Below, piece by piece: positions 54,997 to 62,435 of a stretch of 64,000 nt of DNA. A program made the translations under genes and the position numbers. The stretch comes from Ophelia neglecta (Eukaryota), in assembly GCA_965285935.1 (NCBI GenBank), contig OZ260663.1, positions 73,718,001 to 73,782,000 on the forward strand, written 5' to 3'. Positions within the stretch are counted from its first letter, which is position 1. Each line of letters begins with the position of its first letter. The notes beneath the pieces are model-generated. The model saw only the letters and a list, made by a program, of their open reading frames with translations. It was not told where the DNA came from and did no database searches.

Positions 54997-55859
54997 ATTT
55001 TTCTGAGGTGAATGAACAAGATAACACCCGAACTGGGTTAAATATTTTATTAAATGAGATTATAATGATCATAATGTAATATGTACAATATTGGGTCTAT
55101 ACAAGGTTCAGAAACTATATCACTTACAATACAATGGTTAAAATGTCATGAACAAATGTTGACTAGCACATATTCTAAATTATAATAAACATATTTACAA
55201 TACCAAATATTAAAATACCACACATTACGTGTTACATGCTTAAAGTATGATTACCTTTAAAAGACATTATTTGGGGATGCCCCGTAGGGGACGCCGGGAT
55301 GGGTGGGTGGGAAAACTTGGAAACTCGTGTAGGCTTTAGCGAATATTTTAAAATGCGAGACACGTCCGATTGGTTTGGCTGGCGATTTAAAAAGGATGCT
55401 ACAGAGTGATTTGAACAATGCTGTGATTGGCCAATCTTTCCTTATCAGACATCCGGTGCGAGAGTATAAACATACTCTCGAACCGAAGGCAATTTAGCCG
55501 CTGGTGGCAGCACCATTCACCCACCCCAGAAAAAACCGGCTGCATGAATGCAACCGTCACATTTTTCTGAGGTGAATGAACAAGATAACACCCGAACTGG
55601 GTTAAATATTTTATTAAATGAGATTATAATGATCATAATGTAATATGTACAATATTGGGTCTATACAAGGTTCAGAAACTATATCACTTACAATACAATG
55701 GTTAAAATGTCATGAACAAATGTTGACTAGCACATATTCTAAATTATAATAAACATATTTACAATACCAAATATTAAAATACCACACATTACGTGTTACA
55801 TGCTTAAAGTATGATTACCTTTAAAAGACATTATTTGGGGATGCCCCGTAGGGGACGCC
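54997..55859. repeat. Ngaro B repeats, 299 bp x2 (54997-55295 and 55561-55859), flanking A2
   Basis: Direct repeat from ATTTTTCTGAGGTGAATGAAC to GTAGGGGACGCC; no differences noticed by eye. Confidence 0.95.
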
Positions 55860-56120
55860 AAGAAACGATTGTGACCTTGGTCACAAGTAGTTACATCCCA
55901 AAATAATAATGGACAGAGACGCTGGGTTCGGTAACAGTGTGCACTGATTACCGAGAGTGAGAGGGGGGGCAACAGCATGCGCTGATTGCCAAGGAAAAAA
56001 TGGTGGGGTGGGGGGGGGGGGGGTAACAGCGTGCGCTGATTACCGAAGGGTGAGCAACAGCATGCGCTGACTGCCAGGACAAGGTGGGCTGGGTGTGGAC
56101 AGTGTGCTAGCGGACGGGAG

Positions 56121-57015
56121 TCATTGTGGAAGTGTGAAATGTGATGGTCGTATGTATTTATGAAATGCAGAGCTCTTCCACCTGCCGGTGGCTTTAATGG
56201 TTGATTCGGAGGCCTGTTCAGAAGCAAGCTGTGTGGCCCTGCCGATACGAAAGGAATGGGTATTGTATTGGTGTGGGGATAGACCTGACATTGAGAGGGT
56301 AGTCTTCAGGAAGGCTGAAAAAGCCTCTCTTGTTAATGGTGAATGGCAAGACTTGATAAACAAAGGCCCTGGGGATTGACCACGCTTTGCGATATAAGTT
56401 GTCAACGCGTTGACCGGGCAGTAAAGAGGGCTTTTTTCGGTAATAGTTGGATGACAGGCCTATGTTATTACTGTGTTTGAATGAATTGAATGAGAGCAGG
56501 TAACCTCTCCCTTGCCTAGAAACCTGTGCCAGGGTTAATGTGTGCTGGGGGGTCGCAGAGAGGACGGCCTCGCCAGCCCGCAGGCAGGCATAGAAGGAAA
56601 GTAAAAACAAAGCCTTATACATAGTCCGATCATATGGGGATAAAGTACAGAATGGTATGGCATCTATAATTTTGAAGAGGACAGGCTTGTTTATTGGCAA
56701 CAGTTGTTTGTTGTCCTTGTCGGCCTGGGTCATACGTACTCCTTGAATGGCTTTGGTTATTATAAGGCTGTTCGTGTGATCAGGGAGGTGTTTAATTTTA
56801 TGCACAAAGGAGATGGCAGACATATATGTTTTGATGGACGTATGTTTCAAGCCTAGTTTTGATAAGTGTGCAATGAAGAGGGATAGGATGGTGGGGAGGA
56901 CAGGCAGGGTAGGCTTGCTTTTAAGGTTGTGGGAGATGAAGGACAGAAGCGTATTCCAATGTCGAACATACATTGCTCTTGTGCTAGGCGCAAGGGAGGC
57001 GGTGAGGAGTTTCAC
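56121..57015 (-). pseudogene. Ngaro tyrosine recombinase (frameshifted at ~56430-56465; no ATG at its 5' end)
   Basis: Catalytic residues R (LRAGE), K (SFKHS), H-x-x-R (HSFRIG), W (GRWKS) and Y (FHKYIR); CPV motif just after the frameshift. Confidence 0.92.
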
Positions 57016-58841
57016 AAGCTGAATTTGAAGTTCTGAGGTAGCAGGTGGTCCGGAACTGGAGTTGGGCAGGGCATCATCCCATAATGTCTCAAGAGGGCGG
57101 GCACCACCTGTTGACGGGAAATTTTATCACATAGGATATTACGTTCACCAGGTATGTGTACAGCAAACAGTGATATGTTGTGACTGAGAAGGGTCAGAAC
57201 AAGCGGGCGGAGAACAGCCATGATGGTTGGGCACCTAGAACTTTGTTTATTCAGGATATCAACGACTGCTTGATTGTCACAGTGGAATGTGACATGGGAG
57301 TGGGCAATTCTGTTTGCGAACATTGTGATTATGACAAAGATGGGGTAAAGCTCGAGGACTGCGATGTTAAGCTACTGCCAGTCACATGGCCAGGCGGCCT
57401 GGATCCAGGACGCCCCAAAGGTGGCGGCAAAGGCAGATTTTGATGCGTCTGAGCATAGGTGGAGGCGCTGGGAGCTGAGAAGTGGGGGCTGAGTGATGAG
57501 CGAAGTCCCGTTGTAAGCACTAAGAAAAGATAGCCACAAGTTCAAGTCAGCTTTAGCACCAACACTCAGTCGTTTAAAATAGAAAGGTTTTTGAAGGCCT
57601 ATTGTGAGGTCGTAAAGACGACGGAGGAAAGGTCGACCAGAAGGTACCACCACAGTAGCAAACTGGAGTTTGCCAATGAGTGACTGGAGCTCACGAAGGG
57701 TGAGTTTTTTATACTGGAGGGCAGACCTAATTTCCTCCGTGTAAGCTTCGAGTTTTGCTTTTGGGAGTTTGGCTGTCATCTCTACCGAGTCTAAGGCAAC
57801 TCCAAGAAACACAAGACAGGTGGTTGGCCCAACTGTTTTGTGCACTGCTAGCGGGACACCCAGTTGCTTGCATAAAGTTTTAAAATGTGCCAGAGCCAGT
57901 GCGCAGGACTGGCTGGTGGGGGCAACAAACAGGAAGTCGTCTAGAATCTTTACCACTCCCTGAATGCCATATTTATGTGTCAAAATCCATTTAAGTGCCG
58001 ATGAAAAAGATTCAAAAATTTTACAACTAGAGGCACAGCCCATGGGCAGGCACTTGTCAAAATAATACTTGTTGTCAAAAGTGAACCCTAGAAGGTGGTA
58101 CTGACTAGGTTTTACTGGGATGAGGCGGAAGGCATCCGCAATGTCGCTTTTGGCCAGGTATGCAGGGGGAGGGGAGGACTGGATAAGCTTGATGGCATGG
58201 TGAAGGGTTTCATATTGGACAGATGAGGATTCTTTTGGTATGTTGGAGTTTACTGCAGTGTCGTCATATGGGTATGACAAGTTGTGAAGGAGCCTAAATT
58301 TGCCTTGTTCTATTTTTTCACGCAATGCCAGGGGCGAAGATTTAAAATTATCGAAAGGGGGCGAATCAAAAGGCCCTGCTATGCGTCCTAAACTAATTTC
58401 TGCTTGTATTTTTTCCCTGGCTATCTGTGGTCGGAGGAGAATTGAGGTGGAGTTTTTTGATTGGAGAGGGGCGTCTAAACCAGAAAATTGGATGTCAAAA
58501 CCATTCATGAAGCCGTCAATGAGGAAACCGTCATGTTCATACCCTTTTAGGTGGTGGGCCAGAGCTTCGACCCTTATTGGTGTTGGGAGGGATTGCCGGG
58601 AGCTGCGCTGGGGGGTTTTGTTGGGGATTTTGGCTTGCCCTCTGTTGGTAACAGGGGGCATACATGGGGTGGCGTCTTCCACACCGCGGACAGGTATGTT
58701 TATACTGGCACGAGTCGCCAGATGAGCAGCGTGTTCCTCGTTGGTGAAAGCTAAAGCAGAAGCCTGGGGGTGGTTTGTTGGAGGGGGCATGTGAAAAGGG
58801 CTGACGGTTTGCCTCTGAGGCCTGTCCTGTGCGAAAGGCAC
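57012..58841 (-). pseudogene. Ngaro reverse transcriptase / RNase H (one in-frame TAG at 57372-57374)
   Basis: RT motifs KFRLLHNLSYP, LAKSDIADAFRLIP, LPMGCASS, KILDDFLF, FLGVALDS. RNase H motifs CSDAS, NIAVLELYPI, FHCDNQAVV, HIPGERNILCDKISR. The two ORFs are in the same frame. Confidence 0.93.
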
Positions 58842-59843
58842 GTAGCTCTAGATCCTGGTGCACCAGGAGCCAGGAGCACTTAGTGGTCTCCCGGTCACGT
58901 CTGAACTGTGTGTCATAGTAGCGCCAGTTAACGTTATGGCGCATGAGGTCTTTTATTTGGTGGCAATATGAAAGAAGGTCATTAATCTCCTGAGGATATT
59001 TATCAACATACACTGCCAGGAATATGTCCATGGCTGAGGCCCATTCTTGTTCGTTAAGGATTTTTTGCTTTTTGGGACTAACGCTAAAGTGGGGGTTGCT
59101 TTCGGGTTCAGCGAAACGAAGGGCATAAGCGGAGGACTGGTGGGGGTAGAGGAGATCGGCCAATTCAATATATTTGTGTTCCCATATTTTTTGCTTATTG
59201 ACAGGTCTATGTCTGCCCCGATGGGCATGCCGGCAGACCTGGTGGGTTGATGGCCTTCCACCAGTCTTGGAGTGGCTATAAACTCACCGGTACTGTTTAT
59301 GTCCAGTGGTGTGGGGCGGTCTAGTTCAGTAGGGGCATAGTGTTGGGCCTCAGGGGCCAAATCCTCCGAGTCTTTGGGTGGTGTGGTGAGACTGGGAACA
59401 GCGTGCGCTGATTCCCTGAAAACACCGCCATCATCCCCTGCCCTTTGGAGTTGGTTAGTAGCCTGAGGTCTTTGTGTGAATGCTGTCATTGCCCCCACGA
59501 GATTCTGCATTTGAAGAGTGAATGCCGTTTGCTGCGAAGCCATCTCCTGCTGTAGGGACAGCATTGCCTGCATGGTAGTGTTCAATGCTGCTGATTGTGA
59601 GTCGGCATGCACCGCTGTTGACCGTTTTGTGGCTGTTTGGGCGGCCCGAGGCTGTCTTGACCTGGCTGGCCTAGGTGCTGCCTGATTTTTTTGCCCAAGG
59701 CCCAGTCTTGTTGGAGGGTTCCGGGGCCTGCCTGGCTGTTTACGGGTTGGGATCCTGCTAAGGGCAGGTGCTGTGGTCGTAGCAGTTGGCCTGGTCTGAC
59801 GGGAAACCGGCACCGGGATGCGGCTTTGTCTTTCCTACGGCAT
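58537..59843 (-). pseudogene. Ngaro gag/ORF1 (disrupted: TAG at codon 3 and a 1-nt frameshift near 59190)
   Basis: ATG at 59843 is in frame with ORF 58953-59813. A shift in the A-run at ~59187-59197 restores KIWEHKYIELADLL and joins ORF 58537-59163 (WRYYDTQFRR, C-terminal Cys/His finger CFSFH...C...C..KHTCPRCGRRH), motifs typical of DIRS/Ngaro gag. Confidence 0.85.
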
Positions 59844-60430
59844 GTTTGTGGAGCTGTAACAGAGAGGGAAGAGCAGCAGCAGATATGTAGTAGTTGTGAA
59901 TACATTGTCAAAACAGGGCGGTTGTAACCGCCAAGCAAGTGTAACAGTAGTAGAATGTACTTTAAAGCTGGATGCCCAGTATGTGGGACTAGCAAATGTA
60001 TGCTGCGATAAGATGTTAAGCATGACAAGGAGAATTAAAAAATGTATATATATATATAATCAAGTATAGCTGTAAGAAGACGATATCGTCTTGGCATTAC
60101 AATTGAGGTTCAACAAGATGTTATAATGTTATCACGGTGGTTGGAGAGGCCGCACCTGTGCAATAGCCCACAGGGTGGGGGGTGGGGGGGTAATAGTGAA
60201 GATGTGAATGCAATGTTGGTCGAATGGACCGTAGTTTAAGAGCAAAGACAGCCGAATGGACTGATGGTCAGTTTTTATATGGGATGTTAACAAGCATAAT
60301 AATAAAGTTTAATTTAAGGAAGAAATATGTAAAAAAAAAAAATCAATTACTTTGTATTTGACTGGGTAAGCAGGGGAAAAGAAATGGGGGGGGGGGGGTC
60401 TTCCGTGCAGGACGCGTTGTCACTGCACAC

Positions 60431-61060
60431 CTAGCTGCGGGCCCCTTTCTTGGTCGCTTCCAGTGCCTTGAATACTGCTTTGCGCATGGAATTCTTGTAT
60501 AATTTCCGCCCGAGCGGTGAATTCGGATGAATTCCATCGCGTGACCATTCCTGCACTTGTGGAGTCCAGAAGCCTTTATGAACCCAATAAGTAATGCGGG
60601 GTTCTACATCGCACAAGTTGATCAAGAGGCGGTTGCACTCGTGGGCTGCCACCCCAAAAGCCTCGGGTGTAAGTAGACCTATGCCAGAGGTCCTAGGGAG
60701 CACCGAGCACACAAAAACTGTTTTAACATGGTATTCGTTGATGAGGAGCGTAGCCATATCAACAATTTTTTCCGCCACTTGCAGCGGGTGCGAGCCGGCC
60801 GCCAGGTCATTAGTGCCGATGTCGAGAATGACCAAATCAGGCCGGTATTTTTCAAGATGGCGGCTCGGAAGTTTGTATTTAGGATCTAGTATAGCTGCTC
60901 CACGGGCACCGACCAGATACAGGTCTTTAAGGAGGCAGCTGAGGCGAAGGTGTCGTGCAAAGGACTGGTCCTGGAGGCCTGTGGCGGCCGAAGAGCTGGC
61001 GAGGTGATGCTGAAGGCCGGACACAAAGCTGTGACCTATAAACATGGCCACCGGCGCCAT
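60431..61060 (-). CDS. SGNH/GDSL-type hydrolase (esterase) of the Ngaro element, intact 209 aa
   Basis: All four SGNH blocks present: I FIGHSFV (nucleophile Ser), II GARG, III LDIGTNDL, V RDGIHP (Asp-x-x-His). ATG to TAG uninterrupted. Confidence 0.88.
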   Translation of the reverse strand: MAPVAMFIGHSFVSGLQHHLASSSAATGLQDQSFARHLRLSCLLKDLYLVGARGAAILDPKYKLPSRHLEKYRPDLVILDIGTNDLAAGSHPLQVAEKIVDMATLLINEYHVKTVFVCSVLPRTSGIGLLTPEAFGVAAHECNRLLINLCDVEPRITYWVHKGFWTPQVQEWSRDGIHPNSPLGRKLYKNSMRKAVFKALEATKKGARS

Positions 61061-61190
61061 AATTTAAATGCACGTACCTGCTTCGTAAATAGCGAAGATG
61101 TCCAATTACTTTGTCCGTGCGGGAGTTTCCGTCCAGTGGTCTGGGAATGAAGCTGTGATGAGCGATCTTTGCTGCAAACTAGCAGGGAGA

Positions 61191-61439
61191 AAAACTTGGA
61201 ATATCGTGTAGGCTTTAGCGAATATTTTAAAATGCGAGACACGTCCGATTGGTTTGGCTGGCGATTTAAAAAGGATGCTACAGAGTGATTTGAACAATGC
61301 TGTGATTGGCCAATCTTCCCTTATCAGACATCCGGTGCGAGAGTATAAACATACTCTCGAACCGAAGGCAATTTAGCCGCTGGTGGCAGCACCATTCACC
61401 CACCCCAGAAAAAACCGGCTGCATGAATGCAACCGTCAC
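61191..61439. repeat. Ngaro A1 repeat, 249 bp (second copy A2 at 55312-55560)
   Basis: Direct repeat at constant offset 5879 with three mismatches seen; contains CCAAT/ATTGG boxes and a 9-bp-stem palindrome. Confidence 0.95.
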
Positions 61440-62435
61440 ATATGTACAGACCTGTCGCTATATACTTTTTTATATTTGTAAGAATACTGTTTCTAGGTCT
61501 GACTAACATTATGCACAACTTTGTACTTCATCGCCAGTGGCGGAATTTGTAATATTTCGTTCTTGATTAGCAGATATTGAAGGTCTTTTAATATATAAAA
61601 TGACCATTGTGTTCCCCGTTTATGGTCCCTGGAGAATTTACATAGTTTTACATGCTAACTATAGATGCATTGGCGGACAGAATCTGCTTAGGACATATAT
61701 CTACTGCAGGAAACCCAATTGATATGACATATTCAAGCTGATATTTGCTAATTACCTATAATAGTTCCAACAATAAAAGACACACCACCGAAAAGACCGA
61801 TTTGCCTTTTGTACCGCAGTCTATCTACCTCTCCTTGCCCTATTGGTGTTTGCGGTTCCTCCTGTGATGAGATCGACTGCCGATTGCGTACTTCACCTAG
61901 TCAAAGATTGAAGCAAGATAACTAGGACTATATTGCCATCCACGAGAACAATTCTGCCTCTTGGATGTACACTTGTCTAAGAGGGAAGTACAATTTATAT
62001 GATATGCATTGTTATTTTTCTTTTCAATGTGCCTGTAAATATTAACACTTAAATGAAGAATGATAACAACTCACCATTCGAAGTCATTTTAGAAATCAAT
62101 TTCGTGTCTTTCCTATAGGCAAACCGATAACCCTGATGTACAGGGAATGGAGAACAAGTATCGCAATACAATTAAATATGTATATTCTGACAAAAAACCT
62201 ACGCAATATACAGACGAGCCAACAGTCATTTATAATGGGATACTTTGAATCCAACTGTTAGTAATCAGTTTATAAAAGAACCATGCATCGTATCTTCAGG
62301 TAAGATAGCTTAATCCTATAAAATCTGCCTTATCACTGATTGTGGACACAACTGTCTCCTTTTCTGATTTTAAAGGGACGTTAAGTATGAACATATATAT
62401 GTCAAATATAATACCAATTCTTCAGGACCAATTAT

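Follow-up and report, generated by a model that had tools for sequence, protein, structure and literature searches.

A probable splice joining the gag N-terminus to the tyrosine recombinase in Ngaro-type retrotransposons of animals

Introduction

Retroviruses and the env-carrying retrotransposons with long terminal repeats (LTRs), for example gypsy and ZAM of Drosophila, make spliced subgenomic mRNAs, with a donor in gag or close to the 5' end and an acceptor just upstream of the 3' gene, and the unspliced RNA of these elements is their genome. Spliced RNAs of retroelements can also give rise to intron-less retro-copies. How the recombinase is expressed in the retrotransposons with a gene for a tyrosine recombinase (YR), such as DIRS and Ngaro, is poorly understood, and the arrangement of their genes is described as "overlapping ORFs" (open reading frames). 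Here, we analyze a 64,000-nt stretch of the genome of Ophelia neglecta (assembly GCA_965285935.1, contig OZ260663.1, 73,718,001-73,782,000), hereafter named the window, to which all coordinates refer. Based on its split direct repeats, Pfam matches and ORF map, it contains a whole copy of a Ngaro-type retrotransposon on the minus strand (54997-61441), as are all the features of the element given below, and we argue that the transcript of such elements is in all likelihood alternatively spliced, whereby removal of a second intron fuses 185 codons of gag to YR.

A methyltransferase domain is present in DIRS1 and PAT, and some members of the Ngaro type have an SGNH hydrolase. Ngaro elements, which belong to the DIRS order, contain gag, reverse transcriptase (RT)/RNase H and YR genes in overlapping ORFs and have split direct repeats (Goodwin & Poulter 2004, as cited in PMC9210276 and PMC7192593), and their hydrolase ORF has been placed after YR (PMC9210276). 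The window element resembles them in its gene order, its A1 ... B1 A2 B2 ends, the lack of a methyltransferase, the possession of an SGNH/GDSL hydrolase ORF and its overlapping ORFs; it differs from them in that the hydrolase is located upstream of gag, and in that YR is apparently reached by splicing. We found no native introns or product joining the N-terminal part of Gag (GagN) to YR in the Ngaro and DIRS literature, PMC9210276 and PMC7192593 included, a coverage that leaves out the founding Ngaro papers, so that an earlier description is possible.

Results

Candidate splice sites that join gag to the recombinase frame

The proposed intron 2 (57108-59287, 2180 nt) contains the gag core (59163-58537) and RT/RNase H (58841-57012). 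Its donor, CCG/GTGAGT (59282-59290; the slash marks the splice junction), is located within the Gly-Glu codons GGT GAG; in the context AAC AGT ACC G/GT GAG TTT the last exon base is 59288 and the GT corresponds to 59287-59286, and, counted from the gag ATG (59843-59841), 185 codons plus 1 nt precede the donor, which is therefore in phase 1. The acceptor, AATTTCCCGTCAACAG/GT (57105-57123), is located within the RNase H codons K-I-S-R-Q-Q; in the context TTTCCCGTCAACAG/GTGGTG the AG corresponds to 57109-57108, and 57107 is the first base of the exon, which begins with 2 nt of a Gly codon. As the acceptor leaves 2 nt of its codon and takes 1 nt from upstream, the phases fit, and the predicted join, which passes through a split Gly codon, reads ...DINST-G-GARPLETLWDD.... 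The YR frame opens at 57123, directly after the TAA at 57126-57124 and 15 nt before the acceptor AG, and it contains no ATG for 50 codons from its start, the first one being located beyond SLAPST. The original prediction had proposed a phase 1 donor ACC G/GTGAGT at 59287, a phase 1 acceptor at 57108 in the ISRQQ codons of RNase H, a YR frame that opens a few codons before this AG and has no ATG before SLAPST, and a 2180-nt removal that creates the ...DINST-G-... join, and the sequence bears out all of these points.

The exon upstream of the proposed intron (59288-59853) contains the gag ATG and GagN, whose 185 codons plus 1 nt specify a basic N-terminus, a helix-like stretch rich in Gln, Leu and Met, and a linker of Pro and acidic residues. 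The YR exon (56121-57107) specifies the core-binding motifs TLWDDA.P and SLAPST and the catalytic motifs LRAGE, HSFRIGR and KYIR. The C-terminus of RNase H and the N-terminus of YR overlap over 112 nt (57012-57123), where the YR frame is shifted by -1 from that of RNase H, and homology in both frames continues through this overlap.

Conservation of the sites in foreign elements

Four complete elements from other assemblies (L063-L066) were compared with the window family. The YR of L063 and L064 is 42-44% identical to that of the window family, and the gag N-terminus of these two elements is unalignable by tblastn. The donors of the four elements, AAG/GTGAGG, AGG/GTGAGT, GCG/GTGAGT and AAG/GTGAGT, are located 116-137 nt upstream of the conserved gag core, rank 1, 1, 2 and 1 among 375-489 sense GTs, and are all embedded in phase 1 in the Gly-Glu codons GGT GAG. 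Their acceptors, ...TCTCGnnnnCAG/GT, are found at the RNase H motif 'ISRxQ' (ranks 2, 25, 2 and 2), in phase 1 of a YR frame that lacks an ATG for 32-85 codons and that, in L064, opens just 4 nt before the AG. The corresponding introns are 2196, 2157, 2187 and 2148 nt long. When an element of Branchiostoma belcheri (L069) and one of Nematostella (L070) are included, the homologous introns of the six other elements range from 2148 to 2223 nt, and their length is a multiple of three in every uninterrupted copy, which means that the gag N-terminus and YR are in one genomic frame. In the foreign elements, the RT frame is shifted by +1 from that of gag, and the YR frame by -1 from that of RNase H.

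Thus, seven elements agree: the window family, L063-L066, L069 and L070. In all of them the donor is located within a Gly codon (G/GT, phase 1) at the border of the variable gag N-terminus and the gag core, and the acceptor is CAG/ at the 'SRxQ' motif of RNase H, in phase 1 of the YR frame. Hence, a compatible pair of GT donor and AG acceptor that would make the downstream ORF translatable is present in the window family as well as in the six other elements. The donor has the form G/GTGAG in L063-L066 and Nematostella, and G/GTACGG in amphioxus. Conservation of donor, acceptor and phase had been set beforehand as a check on the original prediction, and it was observed in all seven elements. 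It is the recurrence of these positions and of this phase in six additional, diverged elements, and not the score of the sites, that places the intron 2 sites beyond chance.

Codon use at the sites is restricted as well: the Gly codon is GGT in 7/7 elements and the Glu codon GAG in 6/7, CAG is used in all uninterrupted copies, Ser is always TCY and Arg always CGN. The codons at donor and acceptor are thus fixed more tightly than the protein requires. This bears on the alternative that YR is produced by recoding on the unspliced RNA, through a -1 frameshift or similar event in the 97-163 nt overlap of RNase H and YR, as the C-terminal part of an RT-RNase H-YR polyprotein, in which case the GT and AG would be by-products of the conserved Gly-Glu and Ser-Arg-x-Gln codons. 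The layout fits such a view, since in every family examined YR is in the -1 frame of RNase H and the frames overlap, as is the case at retroviral frameshift sites, and both splice sites are in conserved residues. However, in none of the five overlaps inspected (the window family, F1, and L063-L066) does the RNase H frame contain a slippery heptamer of the form X XXY YYZ, for which reason a frameshift of the retroviral type was rejected; the YR frame of L064 opens only 4 nt ahead of the AG; and recoding accounts neither for the fixed codons nor for the intron-less amphioxus copy and the Nematostella gene model described below. We consider this explanation unlikely.

Records of the joined GagN-YR form

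When the YR exon was compared with 1.8 billion representative proteins, the search retrieved proteins of 390-503 aa that have a basic, gag-like N-terminus followed by YR. They originate from B. belcheri (KAI8494572.1), B. floridae (XP_035692093.1 and the products of two further loci, hence three loci), the scallop Argopecten irradians (XP_069129437.1), Nematostella vectensis (XP_048584136.1), the crinoid Antedon mediterranea (XP_071965033.1) and the crayfish Procambarus clarkii (XP_045621649.1). A GagN-YR frame is also present on Logan contig L067, which may be of RNA or of DNA origin. The fusions were obtained solely from the representative library; a search for homologous proteins returned only ORF-style calls of at most 373 aa and no fusions.

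Two of these records can be related to complete elements. In B. belcheri, the copy L068 is collinear with the full element L069 at 96-99% identity, except that positions 3332-5554 of L069 (2223 nt) are missing from L068. The missing piece is bounded by CCTAG/GTACGG and CTGCAG/GTAGAC, and is a canonical intron that starts in the homologous Gly codon (phase 1) and ends at 'ADTLSRLQ'. L068 reads through as a continuous GagN-YR protein of 437 aa (P0143). The 3' flanks of L068 and L069 differ, showing that they are separate insertions, and L068 is most simply explained as having arisen when a spliced RNA was reverse-transcribed. In Nematostella, XP_048584136.1 (P0226) maps to L070 in two exons, between which there is a single intron of 2178 nt, TCAG/GTGAGA ... 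CTCCAG/CT, with a phase 1 donor G/GT GAG and an acceptor at 'ADSLSRLQ'; a separate gene call with RVT_1 is located inside this intron.

As to the structure of the amphioxus elements, the repeats of L068 (847-6598) and L069 (1-7827) appear to be laid out as B ... A B - ORFs - A, unlike the canonical A1 - ORFs - B1 A2 B2: the split repeats are on the 5' side, and 1.3 kb of sequence separates the first B from A. A tandem-repeat array is also present in the leader before gag.

Copies and sister families in the genome of O. neglecta

Copies and subfamilies of the window family that are 72-99% identical all retain GGT as the Gly codon at the donor, with GTGAGT, GTAAGT, GTGCGT and GTGAAT as the variants of the donor bases. 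The genome contains at least seven sister families whose YR is 50-59% identical to that of the window family, and the comparison with them covers the acceptor and YR side. Their YR is always in the -1 frame, with an RNase H/YR overlap of 109-163 nt, the acceptor motif is GAY AAA ATY TCY CGN NNC CAG/G, and homology in the YR frame begins 5-7 codons past the acceptor AG. The CAG/G acceptor is kept in F1-F6 and F8 of this genome and in L063-L066, L069 and L070.

A few loci deserve separate mention. YR matches occur in unusually long open frames at C5:14462399-14462989 (504 aa), C2:21560471-21561016 (655 aa) and C1:113986768-113987157 (467 aa), the normal length being ~335-345 aa; these could be intron-less GagN-YR copies or in-frame fusions. 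L031 (2709-3073) and L032 (2596-2960), at C8:12.51 Mb and 12.53 Mb, are duplicated fragments 20 kb apart that match gagN (element positions 1787-2152) with 84-85% identity. At the DNA level the similarity to gagN stops 2 nt from the donor, beyond which an unrelated open frame follows. That they represent a processed exon was considered and dropped, as the match begins on its 5' side at element position 1787, which is no exon boundary, the gag ATG being at 1599, and as a weak protein similarity continues past the donor.

Observations that weigh against a GagN-YR splice

Several observations count against the proposed splice. First, the window copy itself is unable to make the GagN-YR protein: codon 3 of its gag is a stop (59837-59835), the gag frame shifts in an A-run near 59194, RNase H is interrupted by a stop at 57374-57372, and two frameshifts, one near 56461 and one near 56438, disrupt YR. 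Uninterrupted frames at these broken places were found in other copies of the same genome. Second, the acceptor AG is lost in two copies, L026 (CAA) and L053 (CCG), both of which look decayed. Third, the donor is located in conserved Gly-Glu codons and the acceptor in a conserved RNase H motif, so that protein constraint could be responsible for part of the conservation. Fourth, the evidence behind the NCBI gene models, including that of Nematostella, is not visible.

Two further points touch on the possibility that donor and acceptor are fortuitous consensus matches without function. Sites were scored with an approximate vertebrate weight matrix, used for ranking only. The scoring called for by the original prediction succeeded in so far as the donor ranks first among 295 sense-strand GTs and the acceptor third among 303 AGs; it failed in so far as the antisense strand reaches equally high best scores, and sites of similar score occur elsewhere in the 6.4-kb sequence on both strands, so that the rank was rejected as proof of splice sites. 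In addition, the sequencing runs of the host in which the window sequence was found, three runs of one sample, hold only DNA-like contigs and contain no 59288^57107 joint; the sole large joint in them, 55859 to 61191, is the B-A repeat junction. Against a chance origin speak the same positions and phase in seven elements whose flanking gag is unalignable, and the amphioxus copy and the Nematostella model, independent records that use exactly these sites. We regard coincidence as very improbable.

The last objection concerns the start codon of YR. The claim that YR lacks a heading ATG holds for the window family, F2, F6, F8 and L063-L066, in which no ATG is found near the start of the frame, and it does not hold for F3-F5 and several foreign YR ORFs, which have an in-frame ATG ~10 codons upstream of the AG. 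In these families and ORFs it is possible that YR is made without GagN. More generally, the intron may be removed and the fusion to GagN yet be unintended, with YR translated from a start of its own (the ATG created by Leu-Cys codons, a non-AUG codon, or an internal Met after SLAPST) or with the fusion as an inactive by-product. This view draws on F3-F5 and the foreign ORFs P0015, P0017, P0044, P0048 and P0050, which begin with an ATG ~10-14 codons before the TIWD motif. However, this ATG is part of the intron that the spliced form lacks; two stops directly follow it in F1 and F2, and F6 and F8 have CTG and then TGA in its place; being more than 4 kb into the genomic RNA, it would be unreachable by scanning; and the phase 1 match of donor and acceptor kept in seven elements is relevant only if the frames are joined. 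An independent start, or a fusion without function, is therefore in our opinion quite unlikely.

With respect to the heading ATG, we note that in L041, L044 and L048 of the O. neglecta genome and in the same five protein records it is created by the RNase H Leu-Cys codons (xTA TGY). The resulting starts read MRQNFS.., MRCYLS.. and MWCYLP.., ~10-14 codons before the conserved TIWD motif, and families with such an ATG may have a second way to start YR.

Structure of the window element and candidate intron 1

The order of the element on the minus strand (54997-61441) is A1, esterase, gag, RT/RNase H, YR and B1-A2-B2. The terminal repeat A1 (61191-61441; repeat search family D2) is 99% identical to A2 (55312-55562). 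A2 is part of the 3' repeat block (54997-55859; repeat families D1 and D2), which also contains B1 (55561-55859) and B2 (54997-55295), and these last two are 100% identical. The window copy thus shows the split-direct-repeat layout A1 ... B1 A2 B2 of Ngaro-type YR retrotransposons, and the 99-100% identity of its repeats indicates that it is young. The gene order gag, RT/RNase H, YR is likewise that of the Ngaro type, and the motifs LRAGE, HSFRIGR and KYIR are seen in the ORFs. Pfam yielded matches to GDSL lipase (60431-61060, the esterase ORF), RVT_1 (57372-58841) and Phage_integrase (56121-56405), these three being the only domains found in the element, and none to a methyltransferase domain. 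Three G-rich direct repeats of ~52 nt (repeat family D3) are located at 55962-56098, between the YR stop and B1.

A candidate intron 1 (59854-61077) encloses the GDSL esterase ORF (60431-61060). Its donor, AAGCAG/GTACGT, is the second-best sense donor of the element and is located 17 nt before the esterase ATG, and its acceptor, CTCTGTTACAG/CTCC (also listed as TGTTACAG/CTCC), is the second-best sense acceptor and is located 10 nt before the gag ATG. In L063-L066, too, an acceptor precedes the gag ATG, at a distance of 2-11 nt.

In every element checked (58537-58841 in the window, and L063-L066) the frame of RT/RNase H is offset by +1 from gag, whose end it overlaps or abuts. A good acceptor is present at the start of the RT frame (58827/58826); it is in phase 0 and does not fit the phase 1 donor in gag.

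Discussion

The results presented here are best explained by alternative splicing of the element's transcript. Removal of 59287-57108 would join the gag ATG, the basic N-terminus, the helix-like segment and the linker to the YR frame through a split Gly codon, and YR would be produced as a GagN-YR protein of ~514 aa, by translation of a subgenomic mRNA that starts at the gag ATG. The absence of an ATG of its own is what leads to the view that YR is translated from the gag ATG. The unspliced RNA would serve as messenger for gag and RT/RNase H and as template for reverse transcription. The spliced RNA would keep both repeat ends and could be copied back into DNA, which would explain RT-less gagN-YR derivatives such as L068. 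The production of YR as a GagN-YR fusion from a subgenomic mRNA, with which the original prediction had accounted for its translation, thus gains support from the comparison, in that seven elements, L068 and the Nematostella model all point to it. For O. neglecta itself, we infer the use of the intron 2 splice; on strong comparative evidence, the GagN-YR splice is probably a conserved expression strategy, of which we found no published description.

All GagN parts begin strongly basic (MPKERQSR.., MAPKRRKEKP.., MPRKRRPPP.. and MPPKRKAAL..), and this start is followed by a helix-like segment and a linker. We infer that the shared GagN serves to import or tether the recombinase and so to take it to Gag, the cDNA or the nucleus. 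GagN may also target YR to the particle, as raised in the original prediction. A wider view would be that splicing of GagN to YR is the ancestral strategy of animal Ngaro elements, at least from cnidarians to chordates; that, together with the esterase intron, it forms a multiply spliced programme like that of complex retroviruses; that GagN tethers or imports YR; and that retro-copying is a regular source of RT-less gagN-YR elements. We lean only slightly towards this wider view.

If the proposed splice is verified, it will have several implications. A conserved GagN-YR splice would provide a concrete and testable mechanism for the expression of the recombinase. It would explain why YR lacks a start codon, why the gag N-terminus and YR constantly share one genomic frame, and how the enzyme-less gagN-YR copies arose, as well as the puzzling GagN-YR gene models that are called "uncharacterized" in the annotations of animal genomes. 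Annotators would have a rule by which the true YR protein can be predicted. The splice also suggests a shared N-terminal module as the means by which the recombinase reaches Gag, the cDNA or the nucleus.

Comparison with known systems places this strategy between several described ones. As in retroviruses, gypsy and ZAM, a donor in gag and an acceptor upstream of the 3' gene would allow a downstream ORF to be translated; the downstream gene of the window element, however, is a recombinase and not env, ~185 gag codons rather than a few would be fused to it, and the element belongs to another order of retroelements. The GagN-YR protein resembles the retroviral Gag-Pol, which is made by -1 frameshifting or readthrough, in that an enzyme shares an N-terminal part of Gag, an arrangement that brings the enzyme into the particle in retroviruses. 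It differs from Gag-Pol in that the fusion would take place on the RNA by splicing, includes only the N-terminal third of Gag and is not accompanied by a slippery site that we could find. Finally, L068 of B. belcheri resembles the intron-less retro-copies of other retroelements, since it lacks exactly the GT..AG intron and has kept the repeats of the element, as is expected of a reverse-transcribed spliced RNA, and it is known here as a single copy rather than as a propagating family.

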